Below are positions 1-64,000 of a stretch of 64,000 bases of DNA, piece after piece. Position 1 is the stretch's first letter, and the number at the start of each line of letters is the position of its first letter. Below the pieces are notes generated by a model that saw only the letters and a list, made by a program, of their open reading frames with translations, searched no databases and was not told the DNA's origin. Source of the stretch: Octopus bimaculoides. Its lineage: Eukaryota. The translations under genes were made by a program, and so were the position numbers. The DNA lies in NCBI RefSeq assembly GCF_001194135.2, contig NC_068986.1, positions 44,687,319 through 44,751,318 of the forward strand. Reading direction: 5' to 3'.

Positions 1-610
1 TCATATAATCATAGTATTGTTCCTACAACTGTAACATTTAGCTACAATGTTCTTCCAATAACATCTTTACTTAACTATACTATTTTTTCTAGAACAAATA
101 TGCTTTTTTTCCATAGCACCGATTCAAAAATAATTGTGCCATATAACTATAGTGCTGATCTAATAACAACCATACCTTTTAACTATAGTACTGATTCAAA
201 AATGATGGCAATATTTAAACACAGTACTAATACAACAATTTCCTCTAATGATACACTTTTACTTGGAGCAAATATATCATATTACCATAGTATTGCTCCT
301 GTAACAATCACTCCATTTAACTTTAGTGTTTTTCCAATAGAAACCAGATTAATTAAACTTAGTATTATTCCTACAAGAGCCATGTTATTTAAACAAAGTA
401 CATCATTTCCTCTGTTAGATATTTCATTTGTTCAGAGCTTTTTCACTAAAAAACATGTGTTATATAATCATAGTATGTTTCCTGAAACAACTGTTTTATT
501 TAATCATAGTAAAATATCCATAACAGATTTGTCATTTAATCATAGTATCATTCCTATAACAACAATGTCCATCAATCACAGTATCCCACCTGTTTTCTTT
601 AATTATAATA
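1..610 (+). repeat. Degenerate coding repeat, 36 bp / 12 aa, (F/Y)NHS-x-x-P-x-T-T
   Basis: aat cat/cac agt (NHS) occurs at 466, 502, 538 and 574, exactly 36 bp apart. Another NHS is at 7-15, with NYS/HS variants in between. Confidence 0.6.
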
Positions 611-3600
611 TTATTTCTACTAGTCTGATGTTTAGCCAGTCTTTTGTTATGGGATCAATGAGTCCAATTGTCTTGGTGTCTAAACAATCAATGATACATG
701 TAGATAGCAAGAATATAACAACAGTAGCTTGGATCTCAGATGCAAAGGATTATACAATTCTCTCTAATAGAACTGAATGGAATAATTTGACAGGCATGGC
801 ACAAGTGAAAAGGAGAATGCCTGGTACTCTTGTTTCTCCAGTAAATATATCAACATATATGGTAAGAATATTGCCCAGTTATCTTGAGAGTTCACCAGTA
901 AGTATAATTTTGAGGAAGAATACATCATTTTATCTCAGTAACACAATAACTATTACGAAAGATGAACACAAGTTCACTCATTTCATTTTGAAATATACTA
1001 AAATGACCACAGACACCAGAATAGATGGGCTCTCAACCCAGTCCTTAACTTTCTTTGATGTTTCACATGGTTATATTTCCCCTTACAGCAGACCATTTTT
1101 TAAATCAACAGATGAAAGAAGTCAACATGCATACTCTATTTATACGGATGAAACTAACCCAGTTACAATTTCTCTAATTCAGTTTGCATCAGTTTTAATG
1201 AATACAACAAATGAACTTACTATACATGAAATAGAAACATATAAAACCTTTCCATTTGAGTATTTTCCAATGTTAATAACTCGGGTTAAAGCTATTGTTG
1301 ATGAGAGCAGAACTTCCAGATCTTTAATAGTTGTGGAAAGAACAGAATATCCAACCATGCATCCAACAGTGACATTCAGACATCATATTGAGAGAACAAA
1401 TATTGATAAAGTAGTGAGAATGAGAAAGTTTGTAGACACTTCTTTAATATCCCCAAAATTTACAACAGAGGGAAAGCTGACGTATGATTACAGTTATATT
1501 ACAGTAACATTGCCATTCACTGTTGAAACTGATGAATCAAAAGTTTTCTATTATAAGTATAAAATTGAACCCTGTACTAAAATACATCTGTTGCCAAAAT
1601 CAGATTTATTTATTTCACAAGAGAAGCAAAAACTGAATGCCACATCATCTGTAATTTTCTCTGAATATTTAATCTCTATAACCAATGATTCATTCATAGA
1701 ACACACTTCATTAACAAGACATGATAAAATGTCAACAGATACAATAGCATTGGTAAATAAACAAACTTTACAAGAGGGAACACAAAAATCTCTTACCAGC
1801 TTTGAACTGTTAGATTTTCAAAATTTGAGTTTTCCAAAAGAAATTTATTTACAAATTCCTGTAAAAACTTCCAGATTTACAGATTTCCATTTAATGCAAT
1901 ACACTGTGACACTACCTTTTTATGAAACTACTTCAAATATACCTAAGTTAATTTCCAGTGATGACATCAAGGATTTTACCAAAATTCCAGACATTAAGTT
2001 TTCAAAATATTTTATCTCTGAAATAAATGCTAGTCAACTGATCCAAACTTCATTCTACTCAATAAATGAAACAAAAAAATTATTTCCCCAAAGAACTTTA
2101 TCAAAATATCTTAGCAGCAAGGAAGTTTCACATGTTTATGCTCCTTTTCAATCAGAAGTTACAGTAAAAATGTATATGACAGATTTAGGATCATCTGAAG
2201 TTACAGAAAAAATGTATATTACAGATTTAGAATCATCTGAAGTTACAGAAAAAATTATAACCAAGCCTATATTTTTTTCACACTTTGTGTATACTATTTC
2301 AAATAAGACATATAAGATACAAAAGTCAGGTAATTTAGAGGAAGAAGAGTACACAATTGGTTTCAATGTTTCTCCTAAGTATATTTCTGGGTCACCCATT
2401 ACCAAAAGGTATAGTTTGACTTCAGCAGTCTTCACAAAACGAAAGGAATTTAAATTTGAAGATAGTAAAACCATACATGCAAAAACAATTTCTGTTTTAG
2501 ATTTAAAACAAGAAAATGTATCAAGAGCCAGTACAGTAGTGCAAGAAAAAAGCAAAGCATCAGAGGTTTGGACCAAGTGTTTAGAAAGTATTCCAATGAT
2601 CTTTTATCAAACAACATATACAATAAAGTCTTGCATTTTTAATCATACTGGTACTACTAAAATGAGTGAAATATTTGGAACTTCAACTGTAGAATCAGGC
2701 GATATGTATAAATTAATTGAAACAAAAATTATTCCAGAAACAAGTAAGGAAGCATCAACATATGTTACATTTACAAATTTATCCTATTCTATCTTAACAA
2801 ACTATCTTATTAAATCAAAGTCTTTTACATATGCAAATGCAACTAAAATTACATACAGTTATATAAATTATATTACAATGGAACCAATTTACAAATTGAG
2901 TGAAGAAAAAACAAATGTCTCATGGATAAACATTACAGATCTCCTTATTGAATCAAGAAGAACAATAAAACCAAACATTTCAGGTGAAATTTCTATGTCA
3001 CAAGAGTCAGAAATGGAACATGTCCAAACTCTTCCTTCAGTACTATCTTTAAAACAAATAAAGGAGATATATGTAATATCAACAATTGCTGTAGAAACTG
3101 AAGCATATCTAACAAAAAGTCTACAAATACCTGATTATTTTTTGACACATATTACTCAAACTAAAATAATGCATACAGAAACTGTGTTAGATATGAAAAC
3201 AAAATCTGTTACGTTGAAACCTCTTCTTACTGATAAAACACTCATAAAAGATATTTTCTTAGATTTTGGTCATAAAGACGATTCTCTTGGTTATTCAACA
3301 TTACTTTCTTTTTTCAGCACAGCCTTAACGTTAAATGTTGTAGGAATGAACACATCAATTGAAGAGAGTCCTTTGGACACTCTTGGTATTGGAAGCCTGG
3401 ATAATACCAGAGGCTCTAAGCCAGCTAGTTTTATAATGGAAACAGCAACCCAAATGGTAACAGACCTTGTGGCATACAATTCTACTTTTGTTAAACTGGA
3501 TTTGGGAAAATACACGGTATATGGAAAAAATGTATCACAGATAGCTATCCATTTGTTTAAGGATTATACAGTAAGCCCAGAAATAACAAAAGAAATCATT

Positions 3601-6600
3601 TTTAAAGAAACACCGAGTTGGAATGTTACAAGTCATGATGAAATTAAATACATTCATATTCCTAAATTTCAGTCACTAGCTTCATTGAACACTACAAATT
3701 TAATGGATACCACAACACTTTATAAAACCAAACAGAAAAATGAAACAATAACAGTAGGAAGTAGTCATGAATTAGTATTCCAACAAACATTAATAACATC
3801 AAATATATCAAAACTGCATTCTGTTTATACCAGTGAATCTTATGGAAAGAGAGAAATTCAGAAAACATTGCCAGGTTTTGAAATAATATTTGCAGAAAAT
3901 CAAAGCACAGTAGAAATAATGGAATGTAGAAATACTTCATCATTATATCAATCTGATATCTCAATGCTTTTAACAAAGGATTTTAATATTCAAATGACAA
4001 CAGTGGAACCTTATTTGATAAATACCACAGAAACATTTGAATGGCAACGAAGTACCCATTCCAAGATATTTGTTATCTCTACAAATTTGACAGGTGTACT
4101 AAATAAAACAATAAGCAGCATTACATTTGTTGAGGGAAAAATAGGTACTTCTGCACCTGAAATCAAAACATCCATATTAGGATTCATAACATCTGAAACT
4201 AGTAAACAAAGCTTCACATACTCTCGTACAGCAACTATTTATCCCAAACAAATTGATATTATTGATAATTATGTGACTAACATTAGCACAGAAACTATTT
4301 CTATAATATCAAGAAGTACCTTGAAGATTAAGGAAACATATTCTACTCCAGAGGAAATTAGTATTTTTCCAACAAACACGATATATTCAAGTGAGTTCAT
4401 ATGGGTTCAATTATCAGATACAATTTCAAAAGTTCCTGAAATCATTTCCAGTTTAGAAATTACAACTCCAGTGAAAGAATTTAGCATTTTGATGAGCAGT
4501 AATTTTACATATGTTTCAAGACAAAGGATGTCAAAATCAAAAACTTTTACAATCCCATTTTCTCCATTGAAAGAGGTTTCAAAGAGTCAATTTATTTTTC
4601 CTAAGAAATCTTCAATGAAAATAAAGCATACACCTTTTAAAACAACAGCATTTTCTTTAATGAAACCAAAAAATGTTTCAAAGACATTTGAAATTACCGT
4701 TGGTTCTACTGTTAAGGAAATATTTCAAGACACTACAGATAAATTTCATTTACCAAGTAAAGTTGTTGATAAATTTATTTCTATTCAAAAATATTTCACG
4801 CAATTAACAGAAACTACTACAACTGTTTCTTATATTTTCGATATAACTGAAAAACTATCAATTGGAGTACCACAAGATGCTTCATGGGAAATAAGAAGCG
4901 AGATGACATTTCCATTGCAAACATATAAAGAAATTTCAACAAAATATAGAGAAAAGATGCACATACAATCGATTAAAAGACATCTTCCATCAAAAATACT
5001 TATAACTTTTTCAACAAAGTTTGATTTGAGGTATTTAGACAGCTTAAAAACGTATCCCTATACAATATTCTTTTCTCTCAAACCCCAACTCACTACTGAG
5101 ACACAGTCATTAGAAAGTCAGCCCGGTCTCACCCAGAAGCAGAGAATAGCTACACTTTCACTATTCGGTGTTCTACACACACAAACCAAAAGAAGCAGTG
5201 AGCTGGACGAGCTAAAGAAAGTGTTTGCAATTTCATACAAACCAACTGCTGATATATATTTTTCTACATTGACAACAGATATTAAACTAACTACAGTTAT
5301 AACACACCAGACTTCTATCCTCAACATATATTTTTTATCAAAAGATTTTAAACTGACTACTATTAAGTATACATTCCAGAAATTGCTGTCGACAATTAGA
5401 CATATGACAGATAGCTACACCTCAGCAGCAATACCTATCATAATGACCAGCCCAACTACTAGCACACATTCATCAATAACATTTCCACCAGTAAGAGATA
5501 AATACACAAGTAGACAACCATTCCAAAGTATAGCTTCATCTTTAATGCAAACAGAATTATTGAGCGATGACTTTATGAAATTAAAAACACACAAAGACAT
5601 ATTGACCAAAGAGATAGCTATTACATCTATTGAAGACAGTAGTGGATTAACTAAACAAACAGTTTCGAGTTATTTAATTGATGTATCTTCATTAAGTAGG
5701 TTTCAGAGTTATGCCAGTGAACTGCTGGTTCATACAACAATTGAAACAATTCAAAAATCCTTTGCTAAAGAGGGTTTCACTAAGACACTTACATATGAAA
5801 CATTTTCAAAACCAATTCAAGGTCAATCTGTGGCAGATGGCATACTTATTTTGAGTCAAAGAGTTGATGTATTCCAATCTTTTGATGTAATAATCACTGC
5901 TGAATCAGGTTTAACTTCTATTCCTGAACCACTTCTAATGAATACAACTGCTAAAGAACTTCTATTGTCTTTATTTACAAACAGTTCTGCTCCTTCAGAA
6001 GAAATTTTTGTATCAGTTGACAGTATTGTTCAGTTTAATGAATCTAATCTAATCTATATCATAACAACTAGTAAACTACTTCCAGAAAGTTTTACTAGAT
6101 CATTGTCTTTTCAGCAATATATAAAAGGAACTACTATGATTCTAGAAATGGAGACTGAGAGAAAAATGAAATTTTCAAGAATGGAGATTTTAAGTGACTT
6201 TCTTCTAACTACACCCACCAAAATCAAGAAAATAACACCAAGAATAGTAATTACAGAAAAGCCTGAAACTGCTGTTTCTTTTTTAAATATATCAGATGAA
6301 AAGTATAACTTTACTCTATCTCTAAGTAGTATGTCTTTTGAAAGTCAAACAACATCAAGCTTTGAGGTTGAAAGAACTCAATACAGAAGCTTTGAATTAA
6401 GTTTTGTGACTGGGTCTGTTAAAACAGTGAATAGGAGTGAAATACTCTACAGTAAAAGAATGGCTGGAATAAAATACGCAACTCAAAAGGCATGGTCTGA
6501 TGTTTTAAATGTTTCAACAAAGGTTTCAAAACCAATCAGACCATCAATCTATGGGTTGAAATTCAAAAGTTTATCTACACCAGATGAAAAGGGCAAAGTA

Positions 6601-9600
6601 ATTATTACTCCAACTGATACATTTCAACTACAGTTACTTCATTCTATGACAGATTGGCATCAAACCCAAGAATTTAGTTCAATGTGGATGACGAAAAAGA
6701 AACAAGAATATCTAGAAATCTCAAGAGAAACAACTCATATGTCTGATGAAAAGAGTACTAAATATTCTATTGAAACATTCACATTTTTTACTGTAGCTGA
6801 TGAAACTGATAGCAATGTAATACAGATTACATCAGCTGTGACATCTATAACACAATATAGACCATTAAGTATGACAGTTAAAACAGAATTTTCATTATCT
6901 TCTGTGACCCCTAAAAAAGAAACTACACTTCCAACTATAACACTTCCTACATCTCCAACTATGATCCTCAGATCACAGTTTACAATGACAACTATGACTT
7001 CTGTAGCACAATCTACATCTCCAACCAAGTTTCTTTTCCTGCAGGCCAAAACACAATCAAATATGATTACAATTCTATCAACTCAGTATAAATCACAAAT
7101 AATGACCTATGAAACACAGTCTACATCATCAGTTATGAATTCTACAATAAAAATTGATCCACTGACTATAAGCTCTACAACACTGATTTCCTCAAGTGTA
7201 ACCAACAAAACATATATTACACCACCGTTTATGCTTGCTAAATCACTGTCACTACTACTAAATATGACTCACATAACATCGACTACATCACTAAATATCA
7301 CTTCTTTAATACAGTCAACATTAAGTATCATACCTAAAATTAAGACTCTCCCATTATCCACAGCATATATAATTCAAAGAATATCATCAACTAAAAGATT
7401 AACTATATCTTCAACGATGATTCCCCCCACAGAATTTATATCAGTAATTATAACACCTACAATACAGTCTAAATCTCCACCTATGAATCCTCATATAACA
7501 CAATCAATGTCACCAACTAAGCTTCCTATACTATGGACTAGACCACTAACTAAACAGTTGAAAACACCACAATCTAGTTTCTTTAAAGTACAATTAACAT
7601 CAACAGCCACTACTTTATTAAAGCAAGCTAGATCACAAATTGTGGCCCTTACAAGGCAATCTGCACAGTCTTCTCCAACAATTCCTCTTCTAATATCAAG
7701 AACCATATCATTAGCCATCAAGGAAACATCTGTTTATTTTTCACCTCAGACATTACAGCATTTGATAGAAAGTGATACTGGGGATCAAATATATGACATC
7801 AATGGTCAACAATTACTGACATTACAAGTGACAACTGGTTATTATGATATAGCAATAACCACAGGAATAATATTTCAAGTGTTTAATGAAACATTAAAAA
7901 CTATGTCATGGGGAAAGACATCCAACTGGGTTACCACAACTACTACTAGGGAAGTAATTGATGGCTATGACCCAATGGAAAGTATCATTAGCCTTGTGAT
8001 AACCAGTACCACTTACAAAACAAATGTAACAACAAACACAAGCACTGGTAGCTACTCATATTCTCCTTACAGTGTGCACAGATTTAATAAAACTGTTTCT
8101 AGTTATTTATTCAAAGAAATTTCCACAGACACTGCAAAGGTTACTAAAATACTTAAAATACATAATGATACAGAAACAATGCCTGGAGATTTTAATGAAT
8201 TTCAAATTAATATGTTTATGGCAACATTCACTGTTGGGGCCTTGTTTGATGGGCTAAAAATAAAAGAATTTACAGAATTATTTTCTAAGGAATCTTCTAC
8301 ATTCCTATCATTGCCTGAAGGTTTAATAAATACAACTACTCCTTTTATAGTATTTACATCTTTTGACAGAAGCACAATCAAAGACATGACTGCTGTTAGT
8401 TACCACAGAAAACAATTTTTCATTTCTGAGCATTTGGTAATGGTCACTGATGCAAAAGACTCGCTTATGATTGTAACACAGGTTCCAATATATGACTATT
8501 TTTTAAGCAGTTCTGTAGTCACTGATATTTCTTTGCTTTCACTAACAGAAACAACAAAAAGAATAAGAGATTACATTACAACAACACTGTCAATGACTCA
8601 AATTTCTTCAGAGGTTTACACAATAATCTATGAAGCTAAAGATATTTTGGTGGAAAAAGAGTTGGATAACATGACAAATATAATTGTAATGACTTTTTCA
8701 AACACAAGTACTAAAAGTAAATATCTAACACAACCAGTAATTCCATATGGAAAAGTTGATAACAGAACAAAGATAGTCATAGAATTAAAATCTTCAAATT
8801 ACTTAGAAGGTTCATTATCTTTTCCTTCTATGACTGTTCGTATCGTAGATAAAGACAGTGTATCAACTCCTACTGTGCAATGTACTGTGAGACATACAAG
8901 CACTGAGATACCATCAAGATTGACACATGTTCAAAAACTCTCAGAAATGCTCACTCTTAAAAGGGAAACTCCATTTACCACAGATTTAGATACTAAATCA
9001 TTAGCTGTACCAATAATAAAAATGACTGCATATTTTACAGTTTTTTCAAAGATTCCCACAGATAAACTGTCAGAAAAATATAAGTATACTACCAGAAATG
9101 AATCTAAAATACTGGCAAGTACTTCAACTGAAAAGTCCTCACAAAATACTACTGACTTCAGATATATTTTGTTTCAAGATTTGACTCATACAATTCAATA
9201 TGAAACAAGTGATGATCAAGGTTTTCAAGTAGAATTTGATGAAACTTCCACTAGAAAAAGATATATTTACATGAATAAAACAATTATAGAGGGATATAGT
9301 TATACTGGCTCTGCAGACTCTACCCATTTGATATCATCATATTCTATTGATATATTTCATCCTGTAACTTCTGCTCTCTTAAAGTATGGTACTATACTAT
9401 TTGATCTGTATACAACACAAACTATGGCTGAAACTACTACCAGTATTTTCCAGAGACATACTGTAAATGATTATTCATACACATCTACTAAACCATTTAA
9501 AATCAGTACAATAGATATAACAAGCCAAAAAATATTATACACATACTTTAAAGATTTATCAAAGAGCAGAGATATGTGCTTTTGGGACAGTAAAGATTCT

Positions 9601-12600
9601 AGCTGTGTTGAAGCCCAACTAACTGATCTAAAAACGACAAGTCAGCAAGAAGAGTACCCAAAAATAATTAAAGAAATACTTATATCAAAAAGTGACAGTT
9701 CATATAAAATGTTAACAGAGTCTTCCAGTGTTATTGTAACATTAGATTTCAAAATTATAAGGAAACAAACAAAGGAATTCATGAAATTGTTTAACACAGT
9801 GACTAATCCTATGATAGAGTTCAAAAGTTATTCAGATATACTCCTAACTCAATCAAGTAGAGGTGCAAGTTCAGACAGATATATTAAGCTTATAGAATAT
9901 GTTCATGACAAAACTATAGCAAAGGGATTTGTAACTGAACATGTGCTGAGTGACAGACAAACTGACAGTCAACAATCTTTTCTTTTTACTGATATTCAGT
10001 TTGTGGTTCCCAGTCAGTCGAGCATAGTACCAAGAGACAGCACATTTCTGAGTCAATCTATCAAAATATCAATAGAAACAGCGACTGCCATTTTACCGAT
10101 AAAAACTGCTAGTCTTAGTCTGCCTATGAAAGTAGTTACAGAAGCAGTAATATCAAGTCTGTTTACCAAAAGACCAATAAAAACAGTAATCTCCAGTCTA
10201 TCTATGGAAAAGCCAAAACATATATCTGTTAAATCTTGGAAAGCATTTATGGTGACTGAGACCCAAATATCAACAATGAATGTCACAGGAATTACTCAGA
10301 GAATAGGTATTTCCTCTGATAAAATATTATATGATGACTTTGGTATTTCATATTTTCCAAATATAACTGTTAGTGCTAGATATGCCAGAATGTCTGAGAG
10401 TCCTTTGTTTAGGACAAGTTTCCATCTGTGGTGGAAACGGGCAGAAAAAGTCACAAACTTTGAAAGAATGAAGATTAAGCTTGATTATGAATCAACTTTA
10501 AAAACTAAAATTGGAATGTTGAAGTCAACAGAAATACACACAGATATAGTTTTTGACAAAATACCTAAAATAATATTTAGATATAGCCTGACCACCCCAG
10601 ATATAATTGATGTTACCATACCAATGAAAAATCTTAGTTATTTTGAGATTTCAAATGCTACTACACATGCAATTGCCAGTATATCGCATAGACATCTGAA
10701 AGCAGAAATAAAAGATTATCAGTTAAAATCCTTTACTCTTGTTGATGTTGATTACCAAATGCAAAACACATCTCTATGTACTTTCCAAACGGATTTAGAT
10801 AAGAAAACAGTAACAGATATATTATCACCCTCCAGCCTACACCCCAAACCACTTACAAAAGATGTATTGTGGATGGCTGCAACTCCAGGCTTTAGAGATT
10901 ATATGGAAACTATAATTATAGAATTTGCTTCAAATGTTAGCCTGATTGTGACAACACCAAATGCTACTTTGTATAGGAGTTTAACGATTCACTCTAGTGG
11001 AAAAACTAAGGCTTTGGAAAGGGATATTACTATGCAGGCTGTTTATCTTGGATATAAACTGTCAGGAATAACTACTGTTAGCATCAAACAAACATTATTA
11101 AGTAGTGTCAAGACAATACACTTAAGTTATGATGATTCAGCAATTATGTCAAAAAGATTAATAGAATTAGCTACTAATACAATGACATATGAAATATCAA
11201 AATATGAACAAGGAATACAAACATTAAGTGTTACTAATTACTATAAAGTTCAAGGAGATAGTGTGAGTTTAATATTTGAGAAGGTGGAAATCACAACCTA
11301 TGAAAGTTTGACAACAGAAAAAATAAAAACTATTAGACAAGAAACTAGATTGACTTATTATGATAGTGCTCGTACAGGCATATTTAATGAATTGAAATTA
11401 TTATCAACAAGCAAAGAATTAAGTTCAGAAAGTAAAAAAGAAATGACTATGGAAAGCAAGCAGTTTATCAGGAAAACAGATGATGTTTTACTATATGGTT
11501 ATGTTACAAAATCTGTGAAAACAGAGTCTATCAGTAAAGACATGTTCCTTGATAAAAGATTTTATGAAATAATAAAAGTCTCTACAGTTTCACACTTACC
11601 AACTGATACCAAACAGATGGTAGTTGCAACAGATTATAAAATAAAGAATGAAACAAGTTTTGACTTGAAACTCATCAGTAAAATGGAAGATAAAGATATT
11701 GAAAAATATGTAAAAACTGATAGACGTTTGATACTGCACACTGGCATTATGACACAATCGTTATTTTTACTTCAATATACAAATCTAACATCTGAAAACA
11801 TATTTGATAGTATTATCACAAAAATATATCCAAGAATAACCACAGAGGCAAAAATTATAAAAGACCTAATAACTCCAAGTCAGTATTCTCATTCAATGAT
11901 ATCTGAAAACCTTACAGCAAAAGATGTAATATACAGATTATCTGAAACATCAAAAATAGATTTCAGTCATTTAGATATGAAATATTTTCATATTAACGAC
12001 TCTTCTCTATCCTTTATAATCCCTCACATGACAACAGCATTAAGCTTTGATAAAATATCAAATGTGATGTCTTCATTAGTAATACTAAAGTCAACAATAG
12101 GTACAAGTGTAACAGTGATACCATCTATAACAGAGCCAAAAGCAAGTAAAATGTTTGCTGCTGTATTCATTGATAGCATTACAGAAGATAAATTATTATC
12201 AACTATAGGAACATTAGTTAATTACACAGAGGAATTTATAAGTAAAAGCACAATAGTAACTGATGTTACAGAAACATTTCTAAAAGACGATATTAAGATG
12301 AGTATAAAATATCTGTTACCAGTAAGTACATCAACAAGTCCCTCACACACAGTTTATTTAAGCATTACAGAGTCAACAATAATTCCTGTACATCAGTCAA
12401 GAATTGATTCTACTGAATTCTTTCCAACATCAGGAACACTAGGATATATTTCTACCACCATCAATGTATTTCCAGTGTACCCAATATCTCCTGTTCTTCA
12501 TGTTAATGTAACAACAGCTAGTTTAAAGAGTGACATAATATTAACCTATGACAGTTTGCATACAGCTTCTAGTTTTATTACAGAGAAATATATTGCTCCA

Positions 12601-53600: not shown

Positions 53601-56600
53601 GACACTTTAAAATATATGACCACCACAATAACAGATACATCCTCTTATGGTATCAGCAAAATATATTCTGATATAAAGAATATAACATCTGTTGTACCAC
53701 CAGATTATAGTACAATACATTCTATTGTGAAACATATAAAAACAGAGATATCAGATGATTACAAAGGTATAAAATATCTGGATATAATAGATATTACAAC
53801 ATTAACAGACTCAGACTATGTAAGTGTTATGCGTGCAGCAACACACTATCAAACACCAGGCATATCTCTCTATTACAATACTAAATATCCACAACTGAAG
53901 GAAATAGCAACTAAAATATCATCAGACTATAAGAAATATTCAGACATAATAGATATTACAACAGAAGTATCTTCAATCTTTATATATACAACAGAAGGTT
54001 TAATGTACACCAGTTCAAAATATTTAGATATAAAAAGGATAACAGAAACCTTATACTCAAAAATCAGTGCTACAGGAACAAAGATACTGTTCTATCAAAT
54101 ATCAACAGTATATCCATTGATTGAAAAGTCAGTAGCAATATTTCATGACACTTCAAGTAAATATCCTGATTTCAGGGACACATCTGTGAATATATCACAT
54201 GATTACATCGTTGCAAGATATCTTTATATGACCAACTCATCAACATCATTATATGATTATACGCCAATAAAATATTCATTTATTAGTGACAAAAAATCAC
54301 CCAAAATTATAGCCAAAACAATAAGCAGTATTCCAATGGATCAACTAATTAACTATACATCTACAATAGATATACATAAGCAATATAACATTTCGAAAAT
54401 ACTACATTATATTACTATAAGTTATTCATATTTTAGTGATATATCCAGCAAAATACCAAGTGATTATGTCACTATAAAGGACTTGGATTTTAAACATACA
54501 AAAGAAGAGTTATCATCAGATTTTCCCATTACAAAATCTTTTCTTTACAGTTACATAACAAACATCTCACTTGAACAATTATCTATTAGATATTCTGATA
54601 TTGAGGACATAAGTTGGAAGACACCATCAGATTCCTTCCCTATGTTGTATTCACATACCAAGAGCCCTAAACATGACATGACAAAACAACATGTTTATAC
54701 CAGCAGTTTAGAAGCTATTTCAACTGATAAAATAATGACAAAATATTTTGACCTGAAGAGAAGGACCACAGATATAGTGTCACAACAAGCAAATATTTCA
54801 GATCTTATTGTTACAACCAGAGAGAGATATTCTTATCCTTTAGCCAGAACATATTTATACTTTATTGGGCCTACAAATGACTCATTTTATAGTGACAGAT
54901 CAAAAGATGTATTTTACTCTAAAATCGACTCATATCAAAATGAAACTAAAACTATACACTGTTCATCATTTATATTATCTACCTCTATGCCAATTAAGGA
55001 TTCATATCATAGTAGTATGACATGGGAGATATCCTCCTCTTATATACCTAATCTCTTTTTATTTACTAGTACTGGAACATCCCAAGAATTAACTTCAAAG
55101 GATTTATATTATAATGATACAAAATATTTAACCTATTTCACACCTATGTTGTATCCATATACCAGTGATGTAACAGCAAAGATATCATCTAGTTATCTCC
55201 CTACAGATTTTCTAACTACAGAATTATTGTACTTAAGTAAAACATATACTTTAAAAGATGCAACTAAAATATATGATACAAAATATATATATATTACAGA
55301 ATTGACAACAATTATATATGCTTATATATCCCCAAAATACATAGATGATATCAACACAACTGAGATAATTTATCATATTCAACCAAAATACTATTATGAA
55401 TCAGTAACAGTATCTCAATTCACACTGACAAATTATTCATATTATAACAAAACAAAATTGGTAATATCCCCCAGTTATATGGCTATAAATGATTCCTATC
55501 TTAGTGACATGTCAACAAAAATACAATATTTTACATATACAAAATTTATATATCATATTGTAACACCAGAGACATTTTATTTTAAAACATCAGTATATTC
55601 ATATCATAAGAAAATGACCACAAGTGATATCTCAATAAATGTGTATGATGCATTAACAAATCCTTTGTACCATAGCGACACAGCCACAGACATAGGAGAT
55701 CATTATATATCTACAAGTGAGATAAGTGAAATAATAGCCAAGAAAACAATTTATTATGTATCTTCAAAACACCTAGACATGAAGCAAAAAACAACAGGAA
55801 TAATATTTTACTACACTTTCAAAAGCTATTTAGATTTAACAACTGAAAAACTTACTGACTATTTACAACATATTACAACTCTACCATTTTCAAAATACCC
55901 TCTGGAAAGTAACACTTCAAAACAAATATACTATGCCTACATCTCTACAAACACTCCATACTTTAGTACTGTTACAATAGTCTTATCTCTTGATAGCACC
56001 TCAGCAAACTATTCTGAATACTCAAGTAAACAAATGAAACAGCCATCTGCGTTGAAGTCCCAATATCCAGCCTTTACTAGTTTTATAAAAGATACTATCT
56101 TCAGTAATGCATCTGAAGATTATACACATTTCAGTGATAAAATGCTAACTACATCATCAGATTACCTTCTAATGTCTGATAAACATGTAAAAATAATACA
56201 TGAAATATCTGATGTAATTAGTAACTATTCTTTTATTAGTAGCACTTTATTTCAAATTATTGCAACTTTCCAATCTAATGATACATTGGAGTCCTTACAT
56301 CATAGCTTTAGAAGTAATACAAGCCATTTATCTTCCCCAGTCAGCATGTTGCATGCAAACATTTCCCAGTTTTATATTTCCCAACAAAAATCAATATTTT
56401 CTGATAACATTTCTACAATCAAAGACTTATTACCAAGCTTTAACTATACAACATATTCTTCTGTTGCTAAATATGTTTTCCTAGATGATAAACAAACAAA
56501 TATGATGCTGTCTTCTTATGTTGATACAAATTACTCACATACTTATCAAATAACAACAGAGATATCTGTGGAATATCAGAGCACAGATTATTCATATTAT

Positions 56601-59600
56601 ACTGGAATGACTGCCAGAATATTGCCTGATAATCTCACCAAAAGTTATTTTCATTATAGTGGATTAATAAAAAAATTTCCTGATTACTCTACAAGTGATT
56701 CCTGGCATACTAAAATAGTTACAACACTATCCATTGATTACTCTCCAACAAAATATTTACAAGCTACTGGAAAAACTACTATATTTCCTAGTTATCTTAC
56801 TACAACTTACTTCCATTATCATAGACCAAAAACAAACCTATCTTCAGGTTATTCTTCTTCAAACTATACAAAATTTCCTACAATACCATCCAATATTATT
56901 ACAGACCTTTCACACCATACTGTATTAAAAACATATATACTACATAATTTCACTAATACAAAGTATTTAATGACTACATATCAATCATTTAATTATATTA
57001 TATTGAACTATTTGACTCATAGAGACATACCTTTATATACAACATCAGATTATACAACAGTAAATTACTTTTACACATCCACACCTATTGCAACTGACTA
57101 TATAAATACAATGCACTCATATGTAAGTGAAACTTCAACACAGTTATTTTATGTCACACTGAATGATTCACAAGTTAGTGGAATGTATTTACACATATTC
57201 CCAGACTATTCCATATTCAACTATTCATATATTAGTAATATGTCAAAAGAAATAACAAGTTATGTTACAAATCAATACTCTCCACACAAGTACTTCTCAA
57301 CAACAGAAGCATTTTTTGATGATATCTTGAGTAATTATTCTAAATATACACAACTGGCTATGTCTACTGCACATCACAGCTTTTATATTGGAACAAATTA
57401 TTCTCAAATTAGTACATTAAGTGATATCATTCTTACAAAACAATCAACTACCTATCTCTACCATATAAACACAACCAGAAATGTATCATTAGACTACATT
57501 CACATATCATATACATACTATCCATTAATAACTACTAACATTAGTTCTTACCTTACACACAAAGTCAGTGAAGTATCTCCTATTAGTCCTTTCCTTCCTG
57601 GCACAATGATAGACAGTTCTTATCATACACCTCTTGCTCCAGAATTAGATGATACAATTTTATTTGAACCACCAACAATATTTCCACATGTTTTATCAAC
57701 AGAGGTATTGTTTAGTTATAGCTTTCCCAACTTGTCTTACTCAAGCAATACAACTATATATGATAATATGTCAATAGAATACTTAAAAATCAAAGAACTA
57801 ACAACATCAAAGATATCCTATCTCTTTTCTCCTACTAAAGAATGGCCAAATAATTATACTTTAGACAAAAAAGACTTTGAAATAGATTTGAGGGCTTCGT
57901 TTGAGTTTAGTTCAGTAACAACAACAGCTCTGAGTAAAATTACATACACTTCTTTATTTGAAGACAAATTAATTGATACTACCGTACTTATAGATAAATT
58001 AACTGACAAGTCATTATATACACATACCCAAAGTGTATTCATAAAGCCATCTACACAAAGCATTTCATCACAAGCATCTCAGATATTATTTACCAGTCTA
58101 ACAAAGGAAATATCCTACATCCATACGTTATTTAACATAACACATGAGAAATATCAAGTTGGATTGACAGAACAAACATATTTTCTTATTTATGCTATTT
58201 TATCAAGAACTACATCAAAAAGTAAACCATTTCTCTTGTTAAATGGAACAGTGACTGATAGCATATTAACTACAACAGATAGTCCAGTATCAAACACATC
58301 TTTAGAAATTATTCTGCCAGCAGATAAGACAACTTTCAATTGGTCAGTTAACGTAACAATTTTACATATGCCAACAAAGCTAACCTCTATTAGTTCTCAA
58401 CAAATTATGCAGACTAAGAAAACAATATCACATTTAATTACAGTTAAAGCACCTTTAAAAGAAACAAGTTTTTTTTATTCACATTACACTCTGCCCAAAC
58501 ATGCTTCCAGTACTGCTATTTTCCATGTAAGTCTAGTAGATATACCATATCAAATATCAACTGAAAATATTATTAGTATTAAGATGACAGATGATTCTTT
58601 AATTGATAGGAGTGGGAAAATCTACTTACTAACAGTAATAATAGAAAAATCAACAGCCATTATTTTACCTGAGATTAAATCTGACAGCAGTGTATTTATA
58701 CAAAATATTTCAACAACTCAACCAGAAATTTATGATATAGACATGGAAAGACAAACTGAAAGCAAGAAACTAACATTAAACAAAACATTAGGTGTAAAAG
58801 CTAGACATGTTCACAATGTGTCAAGTAGTACAAAACCTTGGCAAAAGTTTCTCCCTTTACTAACAACTTTTCAAATGGGACAGAGCAATATTTCTGATTT
58901 GGCAATCAAAACAACCACAGTCTTCTTAGATATGGAACTTAAAAAATACCCTTTCAAAAGTCATATAACATTTACTGGAATTTCAGATTTGGGTGATAGT
59001 TCGTCTGTTACTGAAATATTACAGGCAACTCACTGGGAAACAATAATACATCCTAAAGAATATGTAAATACTTCATTCATTTACAAACCTGATAAGAATT
59101 TCACACAAGAAGTTAGAGCATCAGCTGGCATATACAAGCAAAAGGAAGACGAAGAACTATTTGATAAAACAACCATGCTACTTTTTAAAAAAATTACTCC
59201 TATAATTAGTGTAATTACACAGTCACTGACCAGTTATCAGTATCAATCTATAACACCTATGATTGTAAAGCTGGAAAGAATAGTTACTCCAATATATGCA
59301 ACTGTAACATTGCCACACTCTCAGCCAAAAATATACTTCAGTCCAATATTGGAAACTTCAAGCAAGTTCTATGACAGTTCTATTTTATTTGGTTTCATAA
59401 CTGACAGAATGTCAAAAGGATACATCAGAGCAATGACAAGTACACATGTTGTACTTGTTCGAAGGACAACTGTTCCCTCTATAACAGTGACAAAGGAAAT
59501 TTTTAAAACCTTGAAACTTTATAAAACTTATGACTTTTATACTTCACTCACTTCTGAAACATCATTATCAACAGACCCTGTAGAATTATCCTCCTTCAAG

Positions 59601-62600
59601 ACTTTAAGCTGGATATACCCAGGATATAAAAAAAAATTTTACATCAGCCTTACGCCATTTATTGTAAAAACTACATCAATTATGAAATTATTTAATCAAA
59701 CAGATATATATGACTCTTATCAGTTTGAAAATACATCAGCTTCAACACTCAAATCATATCAATACAAGCATGATTATGATACTGCATCTGGAAAAGCTGT
59801 TAGTTCTGAGCTATATACCCTTCAGACATCAAAAGATATTCATAGAGATGTTTCTATAATATTTACATCAGAAATAAAGTCACCTGACCATATTAAATAT
59901 GATCTACTTTTAACTGAGAAAATACCTTCTCACTTTAGAACAGTTTTATATTTTAATCTGTCATCTTCAAGTGTACAGTCTGAAATTGTCACAAGATCAC
60001 ATCACATGGCTGATATCTCAAAAGATATAGCAATTACAATTTCAAAGGACGAAGATAAAATTTGCACAACAAAATCCATTATTACTTACACAGAAACAAG
60101 AATAGCTACAGTATCAGAATTATTTCAAGTTAAATTTAAAAGAACAGAGAAGGAAGTTACAACTGCAATATCAGAAAAAAATATGACTATAACATATATT
60201 ACACAGACTTCCAAAAATTTCAGTCATCTATATACATCATTAGTTAAGAAAGATCATACAATATTCACTACAAGGTTTACATATTACACAATAACGACTA
60301 TGTTCCCATTATTAACTTCATTATCACATGTCCATATGAATAAATCTGTACTAAACGCCACATTATCCATTCTACATACATCTATATCTCCATGGGATGC
60401 TACAGCATCTATTGAAACTACACATCTCTCAGCACTGAACTTAACATTAACTTTTCTACAAACATCTGTATCCACAATAGCTATGTCAGATACATATACA
60501 CATAGACCAAAGTCTACTCCACAAATGCTAATATCATTTCTAATTTCATATACGTCAACTTATATATCATACCCTTTAAGTGTGCCAAAAATAAGCATAT
60601 ATACATCAATATATGCTTTGAATGTGTCAACATCAGCCACAGATACATCAATATACCTGCCAAGTATATCAACATCAAATATATCAACATTAGGCATACA
60701 CACATCTGTGTACCCATCAACTGTATCAACGTCAGACATACATACATCAATGTACCCATTTAATTTCTCAACATCAGACATACATACATCAATGTACCCA
60801 TCTAATATGTCCACATCAGACATATACATCTCAATGTACCCATCAAATGTATCAGCATCAGACATACCTACATCAATGCCCCCATCTAATTTGTCAACAT
60901 TAGAAATACAAACCTCAATGTACCCATCTAATTTGTCAACATCAGGCATGCATACATCAGTTTACCCATATAATTTCTCAACATCAGACATACATACACC
61001 AGTGCCCCCATCTAATTTGTCAACATCAAGCATACCTACATCAATGTACCCATCCAATTTGTCAACATCAGGCATACATACATCAATGTACCCTTCCAAT
61101 TTGTCAACATCAGAAATACAAACCTCAATGTACCCATCTAATCTGTCAACATCAGGCATGCATACATCAATTTACCCATCTAATTTCTCAATATCAGACA
61201 TACATACATCACTGTACCCATCCAATTTGTCAACATCAGACACACATGCAACAATGTACCCATCTAATTTGTCAGCATCAGGCATGCATACATCAATGTA
61301 CCCTTCCAATTTGTCAACATCAGACATACNNNNNNNNNNTCAATGTACCCTTCCAATTTGTCAACATCAGACATACATACATCAATGTACCCTTCCAATT
61401 TGTCAACATCAGACATACATACATCAATGTACCCTTCCAATTTGTCCATATCAGGCAAACATACATCAACGTACCCTTCCAATTTGTCCACATCAGACAT
61501 ACATATATCAATGTACCCTTCCAATTTGTCCATATCAGGCAAACATACATCAACGTACCCTTCCAATTTGTCAACATCAGATATACATACATCAATGTAC
61601 CCTTCCAATTTGTCCACATCAGACATACATACATCAATGTACCCATCCAATTTGTCAGTATCAGGCATACATACATCAATGTACCCTTCCAATTTGTCCA
61701 CATCAGACATATACATCTCAATGTATCCATCAAATGAATCTATATCTGACATACAGACATTAATATACCCATCTAATTTATCAACATCAGATATACATAC
61801 ATTAGTACATCCATTTAATTTGTCAACATCAGGCATACATACGTCAATGTACCAGTCAACTGTATCAGCATCAGACATACAAATTTCAATGTACCCATCT
61901 AATTTGTCAACATCAGACATATATACCTCAATCTACCCATCAAATGTATCAACATCAGACATACTAACATCAGTGTACCTGTCAAATACAACACACACAG
62001 ACATACATACATCAAAGTACCCATCTAACATGTCAACATTAGAGATACACACAACAATGTACCCATCAAATGTATCAGTCTCAGACATACATACATTAAT
62101 ACATCCATCAAATATATCATTTTCAGAGTTATATAAATCCATGCATCTGATAAATACCTCAACATCACAGATACAAACATCAATGTTCCCATTAAATGTG
62201 TCAACATCAGCCATGCAAATAACAATATACATATCAAATATGTCAATACCAGATATACATACTTTAATGTATTTATTAAGTATGTCAATATCAGAGAAAC
62301 AAACCTCAATGCACCCATTGAGTGTAACAATATCAAGCACAAATACATCAAGGGATTTATTTTATGTATCAACATCATTTACAGATATACCACTGTACCT
62401 GTTGAATGTATCAGCAGGTACACTGATATCAATGCACCTTTGGAATATATCAGGATCAGATAAATTTACATCAATGCACCCATATAATGTGTCAACATCA
62501 TACATACATATATCAGTATATTTACTGAATGTATCAACACCATACACTCATAAATGTATGTACATAGTGAACATATCAACAGACTCATATACTTTGACAT

Positions 62601-64000
62601 CTCACTTTCAGACAACTGTGTCTCCATCGTATGTATCCACCCATTTGTTAGCAACTGTATCTCCTTTGGATACATTAAGCTCCTTTCTGCATATTTTTGT
62701 ATTGCCACTGGACATGTCGACATCCCATTCATATAGCTCAATATCTACATTAAAGATACCAGTATTCCACCCATCTACATCAACATTTCCATTGAGTATA
62801 TCAGTATTCCATCTACAAACATCAAAATCTAAAATAGATATGTTAGTATCCCATCCATACAGTTCAATATCAAAATTGTATATATCAATGTCACATCCAC
62901 GTGCATCAATATCTTCACTACAGATAGCAGTATCTTATCCCAAAATATCAAGACCTCCATTTGATAAATCAATATCTCATCCAGTTATAACAATACTACC
63001 CTTAAGTATACCCAAGCCCCATATGGTATCCAAGCCACAACATTTATTGCCTTCAGTAGATACATCTATATCACATTTGCATACATCACTATCTCCATTG
63101 GAAATATCAGTATCTCCTGCAGAAATAACAATGTCTCTGTCAAATGAATCAGTATTCTTTTCATATACATCAATGGTCCCAATTAAGCTTCCAAAGTTAC
63201 TTTCACATACATCAGAAACCGCTTTAGATATGTCCAAATTTTATACATCTGCATCTCAATTATATTTATCAGAATCTCATTCACACATGTCAGTAGTATT
63301 AATAGATATATCTACATCCTTCCCATACACATCAATGTTTGCATTAGGCATGTCAGAATCTGTATCACCACTAGATATTTTTGTATCCCCACAACATACA
63401 CCAGTAACACTTTCTCATTTATCACTGACTCCATTGGGTATATCTTCTCCCCAAACATTTATGTCTCTATCAGATAAGTCAGTATCTTTGCCCCATACAT
63501 ATGTATCTCCATTTCATCAACCAACACTATATCAGTATACAACAACATCTACAGTGAATATACTGATATCCCTTCTAAGCACTTCAGTAATTCCATTGAA
63601 TATATCAATATCACACACAAATATACCAATGTATCCAACAACTGTACCAGGATCTCTGCCACTTACATCAGAATCTCTTTTGGATACAATGCTGCCCTCA
63701 ATGTCTCCACATGATATATTAGCTTACTTTCTACATACATCAATGTCTCCATATGATATATTAAGTTACTTTCCACACACATCGATGTCTCCACATGATA
63801 AATCAACTTACTTTCGACACACATCAATGTCTCCAGTGGATAAATCAACTTACTTTCCACATACATCAATATCTCCACATGATAAATCAACTTACTTTCC
63901 ACACACATCGATGTCTCCACATGATAAATCAACTTACTTTCGACACACATCAATGTCTCCAGTGGATAAATCAACTTACTTTCCACATACATCAATATCT
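1..64000 (+). CDS. Giant mucin-like Thr/Ser-rich tandem-repeat (glyco)protein, one continuous reading frame, partial at both ends, interrupted only by three assembly gaps
   Basis: Seen: frame 1 is open from base 1 (tca tat aat cat agt = SYNHS, no stop before the ATG at 100) to 44642. Frame 3 is open 45180-61329 and frame 2 is open 61340-64000. The same repeat family is read on both sides of each gap. Inference: one exon of a secreted or surface glycoprotein, based on Thr/Ser richness and abundant N-x-S/T sequons. Orthology is not assignable. Confidence 0.85.
2152..2253 (+). repeat. Local tandem duplication, 42 bp / 14 aa x2.4 (SEVTEKMYITDLES)
   Basis: tc(a/t)gaagttaca at 2152, 2194 and 2236. 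Confidence 0.9.
6900..7720 (+). other. Pro/Thr/Ser-rich low-complexity (PTS-like) tract with recurring QS-x-SPT motifs
   Basis: TTLPTITLPTSPT, QSTSPT, QSKSPP, QSMSPT, QSSPT in the translation. The period is not clearly resolvable. Confidence 0.45.
14430..18300 (+). repeat. Highly degenerate 30 bp / 10 aa coding array, consensus about (V/I)SDD(V/I)T-x-x-S-x
   Basis: For example VFDNITKEST / ISKAVTKKSI / TSDKLTVKSS / LLGNVTLEST / ISHKATVTSI / ITDDVRKAFT show a 10-aa period, with occasional 9-aa units. Confidence 0.7.
18730..20700 (+). repeat. Degenerate 10-aa units, TDVVTYRPVV type grading into ATDEAISVSV type
   Basis: DFVTYRPDVTGDTVDKLFATHVITYKLITTDVVTYRPVVT..., then ATDETGTEY and PDEAVSVST. 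Confidence 0.65.
20707..22260 (+). repeat. Homogeneous 30 bp / 10 aa array PAATDVTIY(R/K), about 52 units
   Basis: Consensus ccagctgctactgatgttacaatctataga, with several 39-bp (13-aa) variant units. Confidence 0.97.
22650..24400 (+). repeat. 30 bp / 10 aa array PGT-x-ATDEII, moderately degenerate
   Basis: PGAVATDEIK / PGIPATDEIV / SGTSATDEIK / PGIPAIDEII, clearest at about 23050-23560. Confidence 0.9.
24400..26400 (+). repeat. Homogeneous 30 bp / 10 aa array PGTAVT(D/N)(ET/VM)L, about 65 units
   Basis: Consensus cctggcacagctgtgactgatgagacacta, with 27-bp (9-aa) variants at 25021, 25378 and about 25585. Confidence 0.97.
26881..27120 (+). repeat. 30 bp / 10 aa array STDE-x-x-LE-x-V, 8 units
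   Basis: tc(t/c) act ga/gg at 26881, 26911, 26941, 26971, 27001, 27031, 27061 and 27091. Confidence 0.9.
29560..35300 (+). repeat. 45 bp / 15 aa array (D/E)HVTSGDTVTVTSIP, block I (degenerate 29.6-34.0 kb, homogeneous core about 34060-34980)
   Basis: Core consensus gaccatgtcacatctggagatacagtaactgttacttctatacca. Degenerate units such as EHVTSKDTM.., EYITSEDIAT.. and KHLTSRHMVK.. lie upstream. Confidence 0.92.
37720..38430 (+). repeat. 15-aa DHVTS family, block II (degenerate)
   Basis: SIPEHVISEETVT, SIPRHMTYVDTVNVTSI, DHVASVDKIVVSHIPEHV, SVPENMTSEDR. Confidence 0.7.
39655..40460 (+). repeat. 15-aa DHVTS family, block III (homogeneous, spans gap 1)
   Basis: DHVTSGDILAVTSLP / DHVTFADTVTVTSIP / DYVTSGDIVTVISIP on both sides of the N run. 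Confidence 0.93.
39971..40176. other. Assembly gap 1 (206 N) inside the 45-bp DHVTS array
   Basis: Run of N. The reading frame is the same on both sides. Repeat register predicts about 14+45n missing bases. Confidence 0.99.
40921..40999 (+). repeat. Exact local duplication, 33 bp / 11 aa x2.4 (ITTETLIDPSN)
   Basis: ataacaacagaaactttgatagatccttctaac twice, then a partial third copy. Confidence 0.95.
41700..43020 (+). repeat. Left flank of the TE-repeat super-array: 15-aa PDVS-x-IHSEVLSTE units mixed with 19-aa P-x-x-YSHVS units
   Basis: PDVSIIHSEVLYLD, PDVSIVHSKILSTDE, MPETYSHVSIVQSEVLSVD, IPGNYSLIRTTYREILTSM. Confidence 0.8.
43021..46320 (+). repeat. Homogeneous 45 bp / 15 aa array PDTEV(Q/L)TTE-x-x-DIS-x (spans gap 2)
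   Basis: Consensus ccagacactgaagtacaaactacagaaataccggatatcagtatg. Two 30-bp units (TESPDTEVQT) occur at about 45620-45680. Confidence 0.97.
44643..45179. other. Assembly gap 2 (537 N) inside the 45-bp PDTEV array
   Basis: Run of N, with an apparent frame change from 1 to 3. The flanks 44338-44642 and 45180-45484 are identical. Confidence 0.99.
45180..61329 (+). CDS. Segment 2 of the giant mucin-like ORF (ORF track 45183..61763)
   Basis: About 5,383 stop-free codons. It begins aca ttg gat atc = TLDI inside the same PDTEV repeat that precedes the gap, so the track's 'M' at 45183 is a TTG Leu codon. Confidence 0.92.
46330..49200 (+). repeat. 45 bp / 15 aa array PDVSTIHSEVQSTEG (homogeneous core about 46840-47950)
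   Basis: Consensus ccagatgtcagtactatacatagtgaagtacagtctacagaggga. Confidence 0.95.
49190..51370 (+). repeat. Degenerate 57 bp / 19 aa array (K/R)PENYS(H/Y)(I/V)STVEREVFST
   Basis: HPTNYSYVCTVEREVFSTE / TSKLYSDNSTLETYIHTTE / KLKLDLHGSTAVIQVFTKD / ELERYSPVSSTESNVFTTG show a 19-aa spacing. Confidence 0.75.
52300..55000 (+). repeat. Degenerate approximately 19-aa Tyr/Asp/Ile array YSD(I/M)K-x-IT-x-EIS-x-DY
   Basis: YSDKKYVTRILSLNISTI / YVDIKQTLTRILSDDIKPI / YSTIKDMTSSKLIPDDISAI / YHDVKD; also YSDIKNIT, YLDIIDIT and YLDIKRIT. Confidence 0.6.
60600..62560 (+). repeat. 42 bp / 14 aa array SMYPSNLSTSDIHT (homogeneous core about 60700-61760, spans gap 3)
   Basis: Consensus tcaatgtacccttccaatttgtcaacatcagacatacataca, read on both sides of the gap. 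Confidence 0.96.
61330..61339. other. Assembly gap 3 (10 N placeholder) inside the 42-bp SMYPSN array
   Basis: Run of 10 N, with an apparent frame change from 3 to 2. Repeat register predicts 5+42n missing bases. Confidence 0.99.
61340..64000 (+). CDS. Segment 3 of the giant mucin-like ORF (absent from the ORF track because it has no stop in the window)
   Basis: Hand translation from 61340: SMYPSNLSTSDIHT... through ...VDKSTYFPHTSIS at 64000, 887 codons with no stop. Confidence 0.88.
63698..64000 (+). repeat. 42 bp / 14 aa array SMSPHDKSTYFPHT, more than 7 units, running off the window end
   Basis: Units start at 63698, 63740, 63782, 63824, 63866, 63908 and 63950. 63782-63874 is identical to 63908-64000. 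Confidence 0.95.

Follow-up and report, generated by a model that had tools for sequence, protein, structure and literature searches.

The 64,000-nucleotide stretch of DNA analyzed here (the window) probably lies inside one giant coding region, most likely a single exon, for a secreted or surface glycoprotein encoded in a methylated animal genome. The encoded chain is most likely non-globular, acidic, rich in Ser and Thr, poor in Cys, and at least 2.35 MDa in mass. The evidence that carries this reading is an open reading frame (ORF) that runs without a stop codon through every sequenced base of the window, together with an unusual restriction of Asn to the sequons used in N-glycosylation.

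Three runs of N interrupt the window (gap 1, 39971-40176, 206 bases; gap 2, 44643-45179, 537 bases; gap 3, 61330-61339, 10 bases), leaving 63,247 sequenced bases in four segments. In each segment a single frame, on the plus strand, is stop-free, whereas each of the remaining five frames holds 17-1,512 stops. The open frames sum to 21,081 codons, or 2.35 MDa of polypeptide before glycosylation. Bulk base composition predicts ~1,570 stops in this number of codons, and the codon-position-specific composition of the ORF, at 3.9% stops per codon, predicts ~820; none is observed. Neither base 1 nor base 64000 closes the frame, and each of these window edges cuts a periodic tract, so the ORF very probably continues past both of them. 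Its frame number shifts at gaps 2 and 3 and nowhere else, and each of the three gaps is located inside a tandem array. An earlier note on this DNA had described stop-free plus-strand frames over all 63,247 sequenced bases, 39,970 of them contiguous, open at both window edges, broken only where N gaps fall in repeats, and encoding at least 2.3 MDa of polypeptide, and our counts bear out each of these statements. The smallest certain coding unit is the 39,970-bp contig with its 13,323 codons, which is still exceptional when taken alone. A mollicute or ciliate genetic code was considered and rejected, as the frame contains no TGA, TAA, or TAG and uses TGG for Trp.

Periodicity was assessed with Tandem Repeats Finder, a scan of identity autocorrelation over lags, and an all-versus-all BLASTP comparison of 200-residue chunks (E<1e-5). 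By the last method, 56 of the 107 chunks have no internal paralogue, and the autocorrelation scan finds no significant period in 2401-13800, 35401-39600, and 54000-59500, tracts that together cover ~21 kb and are equally stop-free. Because about half of the ORF is thus without internal paralogue or periodicity, its stop-free state is no by-product of a stop-free repeat unit. Within the 45-bp arrays, long ORFs are also found on the minus strand, for example those of 560 and 624 residues (42951-44633 and 44618-46492), the second of which crosses an N gap. These antisense ORFs are expected by-products of a repeat unit that is stop-poor on the opposite strand and are no evidence of genes.

The frame is also recognizable when stop codons are left out of account. 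When 2,090 windows of 150 bp were scored by codon-position base frequencies alone, the ORF frame scored best in 99.6% of them, and the six exceptions were marginal. This positional-composition scan shows no intron-sized non-coding insert anywhere in the window, in-frame, stop-free introns shorter than ~100 bp being beyond its reach; at the intron-sized scale, the description of the window as intron-free stands. Composition, codon usage, and sequon density are uniform over all four segments. Of all possible single-base changes in the ORF, 4.5% would create a stop, which translates into ~28 stops for every 1% of neutral divergence. Because the array copies are 20-30% divergent and contain 0 stops, the frame is maintained by selection, or was so until extremely recently, and the observation points to ongoing purifying selection on the frame. 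Constraint on individual residues is weak in the arrays, with ratios of nonsynonymous to synonymous differences per site (pN/pS) of 0.58-0.90 in those that keep register and 0.74 for the 15-residue superfamily of 28800-35400. The fixed-step calculation of dN/dS drifted out of register on two 30-bp arrays and on 46631-48177, and these were excluded.

An unbroken frame across the three gaps appears consistent with every testable property of the flanking sequence, although it is not proven. Gap 1 lies within a 45-bp PDHVTSGDTVTVTSI array whose unit is read in the same phase on the left and on the right, and its nominal 206 N preserve frame 1. At gap 2, the two sides carry an exact 305-bp duplicate whose identity stops precisely where the two contigs end, and the overlaps that rank next are 80-84% identical, as is usual for diverged copies of a repeat. 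The duplicate probably reflects contigs that overlap and were never merged, or else an artefact or duplication introduced by gap closing, and in either case the 537-N gap would be spurious. The first base of each 305-bp copy is a codon position 1 in its open frame, so merging the two keeps the frame. Gap 3 is a 10-N placeholder inside a 42-bp SMYPSNLSTSDIHT array. Its left flank ends in Asp-Ile plus a base C and its right flank begins with Ser-Met-Tyr-Pro, and an in-register fill would therefore be 5+42n bases long and in frame.

The best internal evidence on the fate of the protein comes from its Asn residues. N-x-S/T sequons (x not Pro) hold 425 of the 542 Asn (78%), compared with 142+-11 in shuffled sequences, and N-P-S/T does not occur anywhere in the ORF. 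Ser or Thr is found at position +2 of Asn in 78.4% of cases, whereas the other offsets from -4 to +4 give 12-37% (24.8% at -2), and the control residues Asp, His, Gln, Lys, Glu, and Gly are followed by x-S/T in 21-31%. The aperiodic half of the ORF keeps the pattern (253 of 339 Asn), as does every 1,000-residue block that contains Asn; one block, of 488 residues, is Asn-free. Relative to the expectation from base composition, Asn is present at 0.43, Lys at 0.90, and Cys at 0.20, a five-fold depletion of the last. Because Asn overall reaches 0.43 of its expected level and yet 78% of it is in sequons, Asn outside sequons is strongly depleted, to ~eight-fold below the base-composition level (for example, in tracts 1-2400, 24448-26390, and 60673-62318). 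Such saturation is well above the level of ordinary secreted glycoproteins. We can conceive of no DNA-level cause for an Asn pattern that is one-sided, residue-specific, and specific to position +2, whereas selection acting through the eukaryotic oligosaccharyltransferase would produce it. Together with the Cys depletion, the sequon pattern argues strongly that the ORF would be translated into the endoplasmic reticulum (ER).

The amino acid composition is dominated by Thr (14.7%), Ser (12.7%), Ile (10.4%), Val (7.1%), Leu (6.8%), and Asp (6.4%), with Lys at 5.7%, Glu at 5.3%, Pro at 4.1%, Trp at 0.24%, and Cys at 0.19%, and is net acidic (Lys+Arg 8.1% versus Asp+Glu 11.7%). Ser and Thr make up 27% of the chain (~5,800 residues) and 17-43% of every 100-residue window, and the longest stretch free of both is 21 residues. 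A high Ser/Thr density throughout is a hallmark of mucin domains, and the value here is at the low end of the ~25-52% given for human mucins (PMC13345508). Tandem repeats within one large central exon are another mucin feature, and the ORF has 30-, 42-, and 45-bp arrays of 5-65 copies each, all in frame and with no intron-sized insert, although about half of it is non-repetitive. The features of tethered and of gel-forming mucins are not seen in the window: its 21,081 residues contain neither a Pfam match to SEA nor a convincing transmembrane helix, one borderline 19-mer being the only transmembrane-like segment, and no Pfam match to VWD/C8/TIL, CysD, or cystine-knot domains; such features could still lie past the window edges, those of tethered mucins downstream of base 64000. 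Only two Cys clusters are present in the 21,081 residues, at 39247-39339 (4 Cys in 31 residues) and 40552-40632 (4 Cys in 27 residues). They flank the PDHVTS array that contains gap 1, are mutually dissimilar, and have no Pfam domain match; they could be small disulfide-bonded modules or cross-linking points.

Composition and sequon pattern thus indicate a secreted or surface glycoprotein, as the earlier note had proposed. Its term mucin-like fits in part: Ser/Thr-rich repeats and the lack of an intron-sized insert speak for it, whereas a Pro content of 4%, a hydrophobic content of 35%, and the 1% of windows at the threshold for Pro/Thr/Ser-rich (PTS) sequence speak against it. We would say that the protein loosely works like a mucin domain, with its sequence giving no support for membership in a mucin family.

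Homology searches agree with the earlier description of a protein with no recognizable domain over 64 kb and revealed no homologue in the collections searched. Pfam over all 21,081 residues returned sub-threshold, repeat-driven matches only, and Extensin_1 (54.8 bits against a cut-off of 105 bits), Csa1, DUF1866, and Herpes_TK_C were dismissed as noise of this kind. NCBIfam gave no match to the ORF, a PDB sequence search with three large pieces gave none, and Rfam gave none. Queries from 1-12000, 51402-60398, and 27301-35400 found nothing at E<=1e-3 in a set of 5.8 billion proteins, and phmmer with 36001-39600 found 0 matches among 1.84 billion representatives. A scan of 7801-10800 against JGI metagenomes, GTDB (185,579 species genomes), and IMG/VR contigs revealed no relative, and an exact 26-mer from a Cys cluster had no match in metagenomes. 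Exact look-ups of two side ORFs matched no record. A full-text search on six repeat peptides yielded no publication, and a literature search for giant mucin exons of this kind turned up human mucin papers alone. The window's own protein is likewise absent from the protein collections searched, which is compatible with, but no proof of, an unannotated gene.

The base composition of the window is informative about its origin. GC content is 31% overall and 20% at third codon positions (GC3). For CpG, the observed/expected ratio is 0.14 overall and ranges from 0.13 to 0.19 among the three codon contexts; the ratios of CpA and TpG are 1.38 and 1.37. Methylation-driven decay of CpG is typical of vertebrates and of a few heavily methylated invertebrates, and the dinucleotide ratios of the window indicate a putative methylated animal genome. 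N gaps of estimated length fit a scaffolded draft assembly of a eukaryote.

The repeat arrays and the aperiodic tracts between them are listed in Table 1; the arrays make up four large superfamilies, to which a degenerate 12-14-residue tract at the window start is added. Periodicity declines gradually into the flanks of every array, and the units of 41.4-48.8 kb (PDTEVQTTE / HSEVQSTE) grade into 19-residue units up to 52.4 kb. These observations fit growth through short tandem arrays (30, 42, 45, and 57 bp) that arise and then decay, with strong selection on frame and composition and weak selection on residue identity. What the ORF shows to be selected are bulk properties: a frame without breaks, the density of Ser and Thr, Asn confined to sites open to glycosylation, a lack of free Cys, and spaced hydrophobic residues. 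The youngest array in the window is the core at 63698-64000, which has a 126-bp higher-order unit (three 42-bp units) with 93% matches. The window end cuts this array, an indication of a recent expansion at that end and of an ORF that goes on past base 64000.

Table 1. Reading-frame segments, repeat arrays, and aperiodic tracts in the 64,000-nucleotide window
Feature	Position	Strand	Details
ORF segment A	1-39970	+	Absolute frame 1; 13,323 codons; gap-free; open at window start; 0 stops versus 442-1,512 in other five frames
ORF segment B	40177-44642	+	Absolute frame 1; 1,488 codons; 4-Cys cluster at 40552-40632; 0 stops
ORF segment C	45180-61329	+	Absolute frame 3; 5,383 codons; 0 stops
ORF segment D	61340-64000	+	Absolute frame 2; 887 codons; open at window end; 0 stops
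Gap 2 and flanking duplicate	44338-45484	+	44338-44642 = 45180-45484 exactly (305 bp, 0 mismatches); gap 44643-45179
Degenerate 12-14-residue tract (xNHSxxPxTT-like)	1-2400	+	Runs off window start; autocorrelation at lag 12-14 residues, z up to 6.3
Aperiodic Ser/Thr-rich tract	2401-13800	+	~3,800 codons; no internal paralogue at E<1e-5, no significant lag
10-residue repeat superfamily	15600-27000	+	Fades at both edges; lag 10 z up to 26.9; BLASTP cluster
10-residue cores	20702-22246 (TDVTIYRPAA), 22777-23617, 24448-26390 (VTDETLPGTA)	+	Period 30 bp; 50, 28, and 65 copies
15-residue repeat superfamily (IPDHVTSGDTVTVTS)	28800-35400	+	Core 34224-34978; period 45 bp, 16.8 copies, 0% indels; lag 15 z up to 20.8
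Aperiodic tract ending in 4-Cys cluster	35401-39600	+	Cluster at 39247-39339; BLASTP chunks and lag scan
Second 45-bp PDHVTS-family array	39677-40443	+	Holds gap 1 (39971-40176); Tandem Repeats Finder; phase shared by both sides
15-residue superfamily (PDTEVQTTExxDIS / HSEVQSTEGPDVSTI)	41377-48780	+	Holds gap 2; periods 45, 90, and 135 bp; lag 15/30 z up to 32
Cores of PDTEVQTTE superfamily	43137-44642, 45186-46377, 46631-48177	+	Tandem Repeats Finder; BLASTP cluster of 16 chunks
Degenerate 19-residue tract (YSHVSTxxxEVFSTEKPEN-like)	48780-52400	+	Lag 19 z 5.6-9.5
Aperiodic Tyr/Ser/Thr-rich tract	54000-59500	+	BLASTP chunks and lag scan
14-residue superfamily	59580-64000	+	Holds gap 3 (61330-61339); cores 60673-62318 (SMYPSNLSTSDIHT) and 63698-64000 (HTSMSPHDKSTYFP); pN/pS 0.58-0.75

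The protein is read as mainly extended and non-globular. In the aperiodic tracts (2401-13800, 35401-39600, and 54000-59500), the autocorrelation of hydrophobicity takes negative values from lag 1 to lag 4 (z = -9.4 at lag 2), and neither the alternation expected of beta-strands (lag 2) nor helical periodicity was detected in this aperiodic half. This spacing suggests selection against hydrophobic clusters despite a hydrophobic content of 35%. Ser and Thr, too, are more evenly spaced than chance in these tracts. AlphaFold2 run without an alignment on the aperiodic piece 7801-9000 gave a predicted local distance difference test score (pLDDT) of 28.8. For 34201-35100, in the 15-residue PDHVTSGDTVTVTSI array, it returned a regular stacked all-beta model (pLDDT 54.8, predicted template modeling score 0.57). 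The top Foldseek matches of this model were parallel beta-helix proteins, none of them significant (best E = 0.14), and the model may be either a repeat-driven artefact or a hint of a solenoid fiber.

We propose that the chain would be translocated into the ER, where it could be N-glycosylated at up to ~425 sequons, roughly one per 50 residues, and O-glycosylated on part of its ~5,800 Ser and Thr residues. The product might be a micrometer-long hydrated glycan brush that serves as a component of a surface coat, mucus, egg coat, or adhesive.

Several points weigh against this proposal. Expression, secretion, and glycosylation are read here from signatures in the DNA sequence, and a signal peptide, anchor, or terminal domains would lie outside the window. 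The assignment to an animal, which we consider the most likely one, is drawn from dinucleotide statistics. The nominal gap lengths keep the frame at gap 1 only, and the gaps themselves are unreadable; short in-frame, stop-free introns below ~100 bp are possible. Parts of the protein may form a folded, solenoid-like fiber and not a disordered brush, as the model of the array could suggest. Nor is the composition classically mucin-like, with Pro at 4.1% and, where few hydrophobic or aromatic residues would be expected, Ile, Leu, Val, Phe, Met, Tyr, and Trp together at 34.8%. The classical PTS threshold used in PTSPred-type screens is Ser+Thr >=40% with Pro >=5% per 100-residue window, and 1% of 2,070 windows reach it, at 6721-7290 and 60450-61759.

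The repeat content and the near-neutral evolution of the sequence raise the question of whether the frame is a product of selection at all. About half of the window consists of 30-, 42-, and 45-bp arrays and pN/pS in these arrays is close to 1, as might be seen in a non-coding minisatellite or satellite whose unit is a multiple of three and lacks stops by chance, such that the frame is inherited and not selected. The data already contradict this explanation, to which we assign next to no probability. The 56 chunks without a paralogue and the ~21 kb of aperiodic sequence are just as stop-free as the arrays, the tract 2401-13800 alone would be stop-free by chance with P ~ e^-150 at 3.9% stops per codon, and array copies that differ by 20-30% should have gathered ~28 stops per 1% of neutral divergence and have none. 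The position-specific Asn-x-Ser/Thr signal and the Cys depletion are, moreover, features of a protein. A related explanation is that the ORF is a recently inactivated or never-expressed relic, which was under coding constraint until a very short time ago and is now a silent pseudogene or a non-functional expansion. The near-neutral constraint on residues would be expected of a relic, the searched collections hold no homologues, and DNA sequence is all that the case is known from. At ~28 stops per 1%, however, zero stops limits any unconstrained drift to well under 0.1% divergence, and even the oldest, aperiodic tracts retain the signatures in sequons, Cys, and hydrophobic spacing. We regard a relic as improbable.

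A more substantial concern is that the window combines several genes or exons, or is an assembly chimera, in which the gaps hide stops, frameshifts, introns, or joins between paralogues and the true unit is at most 39,970 bp. The frame numbers do run 1, 3, and 2 across gaps 2 and 3, the gap sizes are estimates, and the exact 305-bp duplicate shows that the assembler had trouble at gap 2. Yet every gap has the same repeat family in the same phase on both sides, the merge at gap 2 brings codon position 1 onto codon position 1, any in-register fill of gap 1 or gap 3 would by itself be in frame, and the four segments are uniform in composition, codon usage, and sequon density. We consider such a division unlikely, though it deserves to be kept in mind, and even then a single contig with 13,323 codons, the minimal unit, would be exceptional. 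Finally, the absence of introns from the region and the GC content of 31% would also suit a giant surface adhesin of a low-GC bacterium on a contaminant or symbiont scaffold, perhaps one N-glycosylated by an HMW1C-type enzyme. Bacterial single ORFs of >60 kb exist, and HMW1C-type cytoplasmic N-glycosyltransferases also target N-x-S/T. Against this origin, CpG at 0.14 of expectation with a reciprocal excess of TpG and CpA, whatever the codon context, is what cytosine methylation in the germ line leaves behind; Pfam and NCBIfam reveal no Ig-like, cadherin-like, or beta-helix adhesin domain; and no relative is found in the 185,579 GTDB species genomes, in JGI metagenomes or IMG/VR contigs, or in two largely prokaryotic protein sets. 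Short Ser/Thr repeats of 10-15 residues are also atypical of giant bacterial adhesins, and we judge a bacterial source very improbable.

If the giant glycoprotein-coding region is continuous and expressed, it is among the largest coding exons and polypeptides recorded, as the window alone accounts for 2.35 MDa and neither end has been reached. Such a gene would probably escape gene finders and repeat maskers or be broken up by them. The ORF would also be a clean natural example of selection on bulk properties and not on residue identity, and the near-total restriction of Asn to sequons provides a simple, testable signature that could help to detect other secretory giants that lie hidden in genomes. 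More tentatively, and with considerable doubt, we suggest that the window samples an animal gene, unannotated and lineage-restricted, whose one coding exon exceeds 64 kb, representing a distinct 'N-glycan-saturated' class of giant brush protein. In such a gene, selection would act on the frame, Ser/Thr density, sequon-restricted Asn, the absence of Cys, and dispersed hydrophobic residues, while the sequence turns over by array birth and decay. If true, no largely non-repetitive coding exon known to us would be longer, and its product would be one of the largest animal polypeptides.

The size of the ORF is best judged against human mucins. The earlier note had set the gap-free part at about twice the size of the largest human exons. 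By the reference annotation, MUC16 exon 3 (>21 kb) is indeed the largest internal exon of human genes, with exons of 10-15 kb in MUC4, MUC12, MUC17, and MUC5B and one of >17 kb in titin (PMC3467050). This yardstick is outdated: a pangenome preprint of 2026 describes MUC12 alleles in which one repeat-bearing, variable-number tandem-repeat (VNTR) exon, called the largest human coding exon, encodes up to 23,080 residues, and a longest MUC4 repeat allele of 27.8 kb (PMC13345508). The ORF roughly equals the longest MUC12 alleles in size and is near the top of the known range, and its 40-kb gap-free, largely non-repetitive tract is still exceptional.

The ORF shares the megadalton scale of titin and of PKZILLA-1, the latter described as the largest known protein, exceeding titin (bioRxiv 10.1101/2024.01.29.577497). 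Those proteins are built of many folded catalytic or Ig/Fn3 domains, whereas the ORF is without a recognizable domain or a visible intron in the window. Both are also encoded in many exons. Fungal adhesins of the Flo/Als type have Thr/Ser/Ile/Val-rich repeats, heavy N- and O-glycosylation, fast repeat turnover, and beta-prone sequence, and the ORF resembles them in its Thr/Ser/Ile/Val-rich tandem repeats and beta-prone sequence. Such adhesins are smaller by one to two orders of magnitude, and they carry N-terminal lectin or Ig-like domains and glycosylphosphatidylinositol anchors. The ORF differs from them in having no Flocculin or Als Pfam match and a CpG decay that is atypical of yeast genomes.

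Among human mucins, the VNTR exons of MUC12, MUC3, MUC17, and MUC4 are similar in that a single exon of tens of kilobases is made from short in-frame tandem repeats, with Ser and Thr constrained while the repeats degenerate at the array edges. The ORF, in contrast, has at least five unrelated arrays (of 10-, 14-, 15-, and 19-residue units) interleaved with ~21 kb of aperiodic sequence, and its Ser+Thr content of 27% is at the bottom of the human range, with Pro at 4% and no homologues in the collections searched. The N-terminal region of MUC16 is also comparable, with thousands of largely non-repetitive, Ser/Thr-rich, Cys-poor residues without introns. No other human mucin has a repeat region as degenerate as that of MUC16, in which constraint at the residue level is relaxed (PMC13345508); this matches the pN/pS of 0.6-0.9 in the ORF. 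The ORF departs from MUC16 in having no sequence similarity to it, no SEA module in the window, a GC3 of 20%, much lower Pro, and Ile, Val, and Tyr contents that seem higher, and its gap-free tract is nearly twice the length of MUC16 exon 3. The chain is, in addition, rich in Ile, Val, and Tyr, and its Asn content is almost sequon-saturated.

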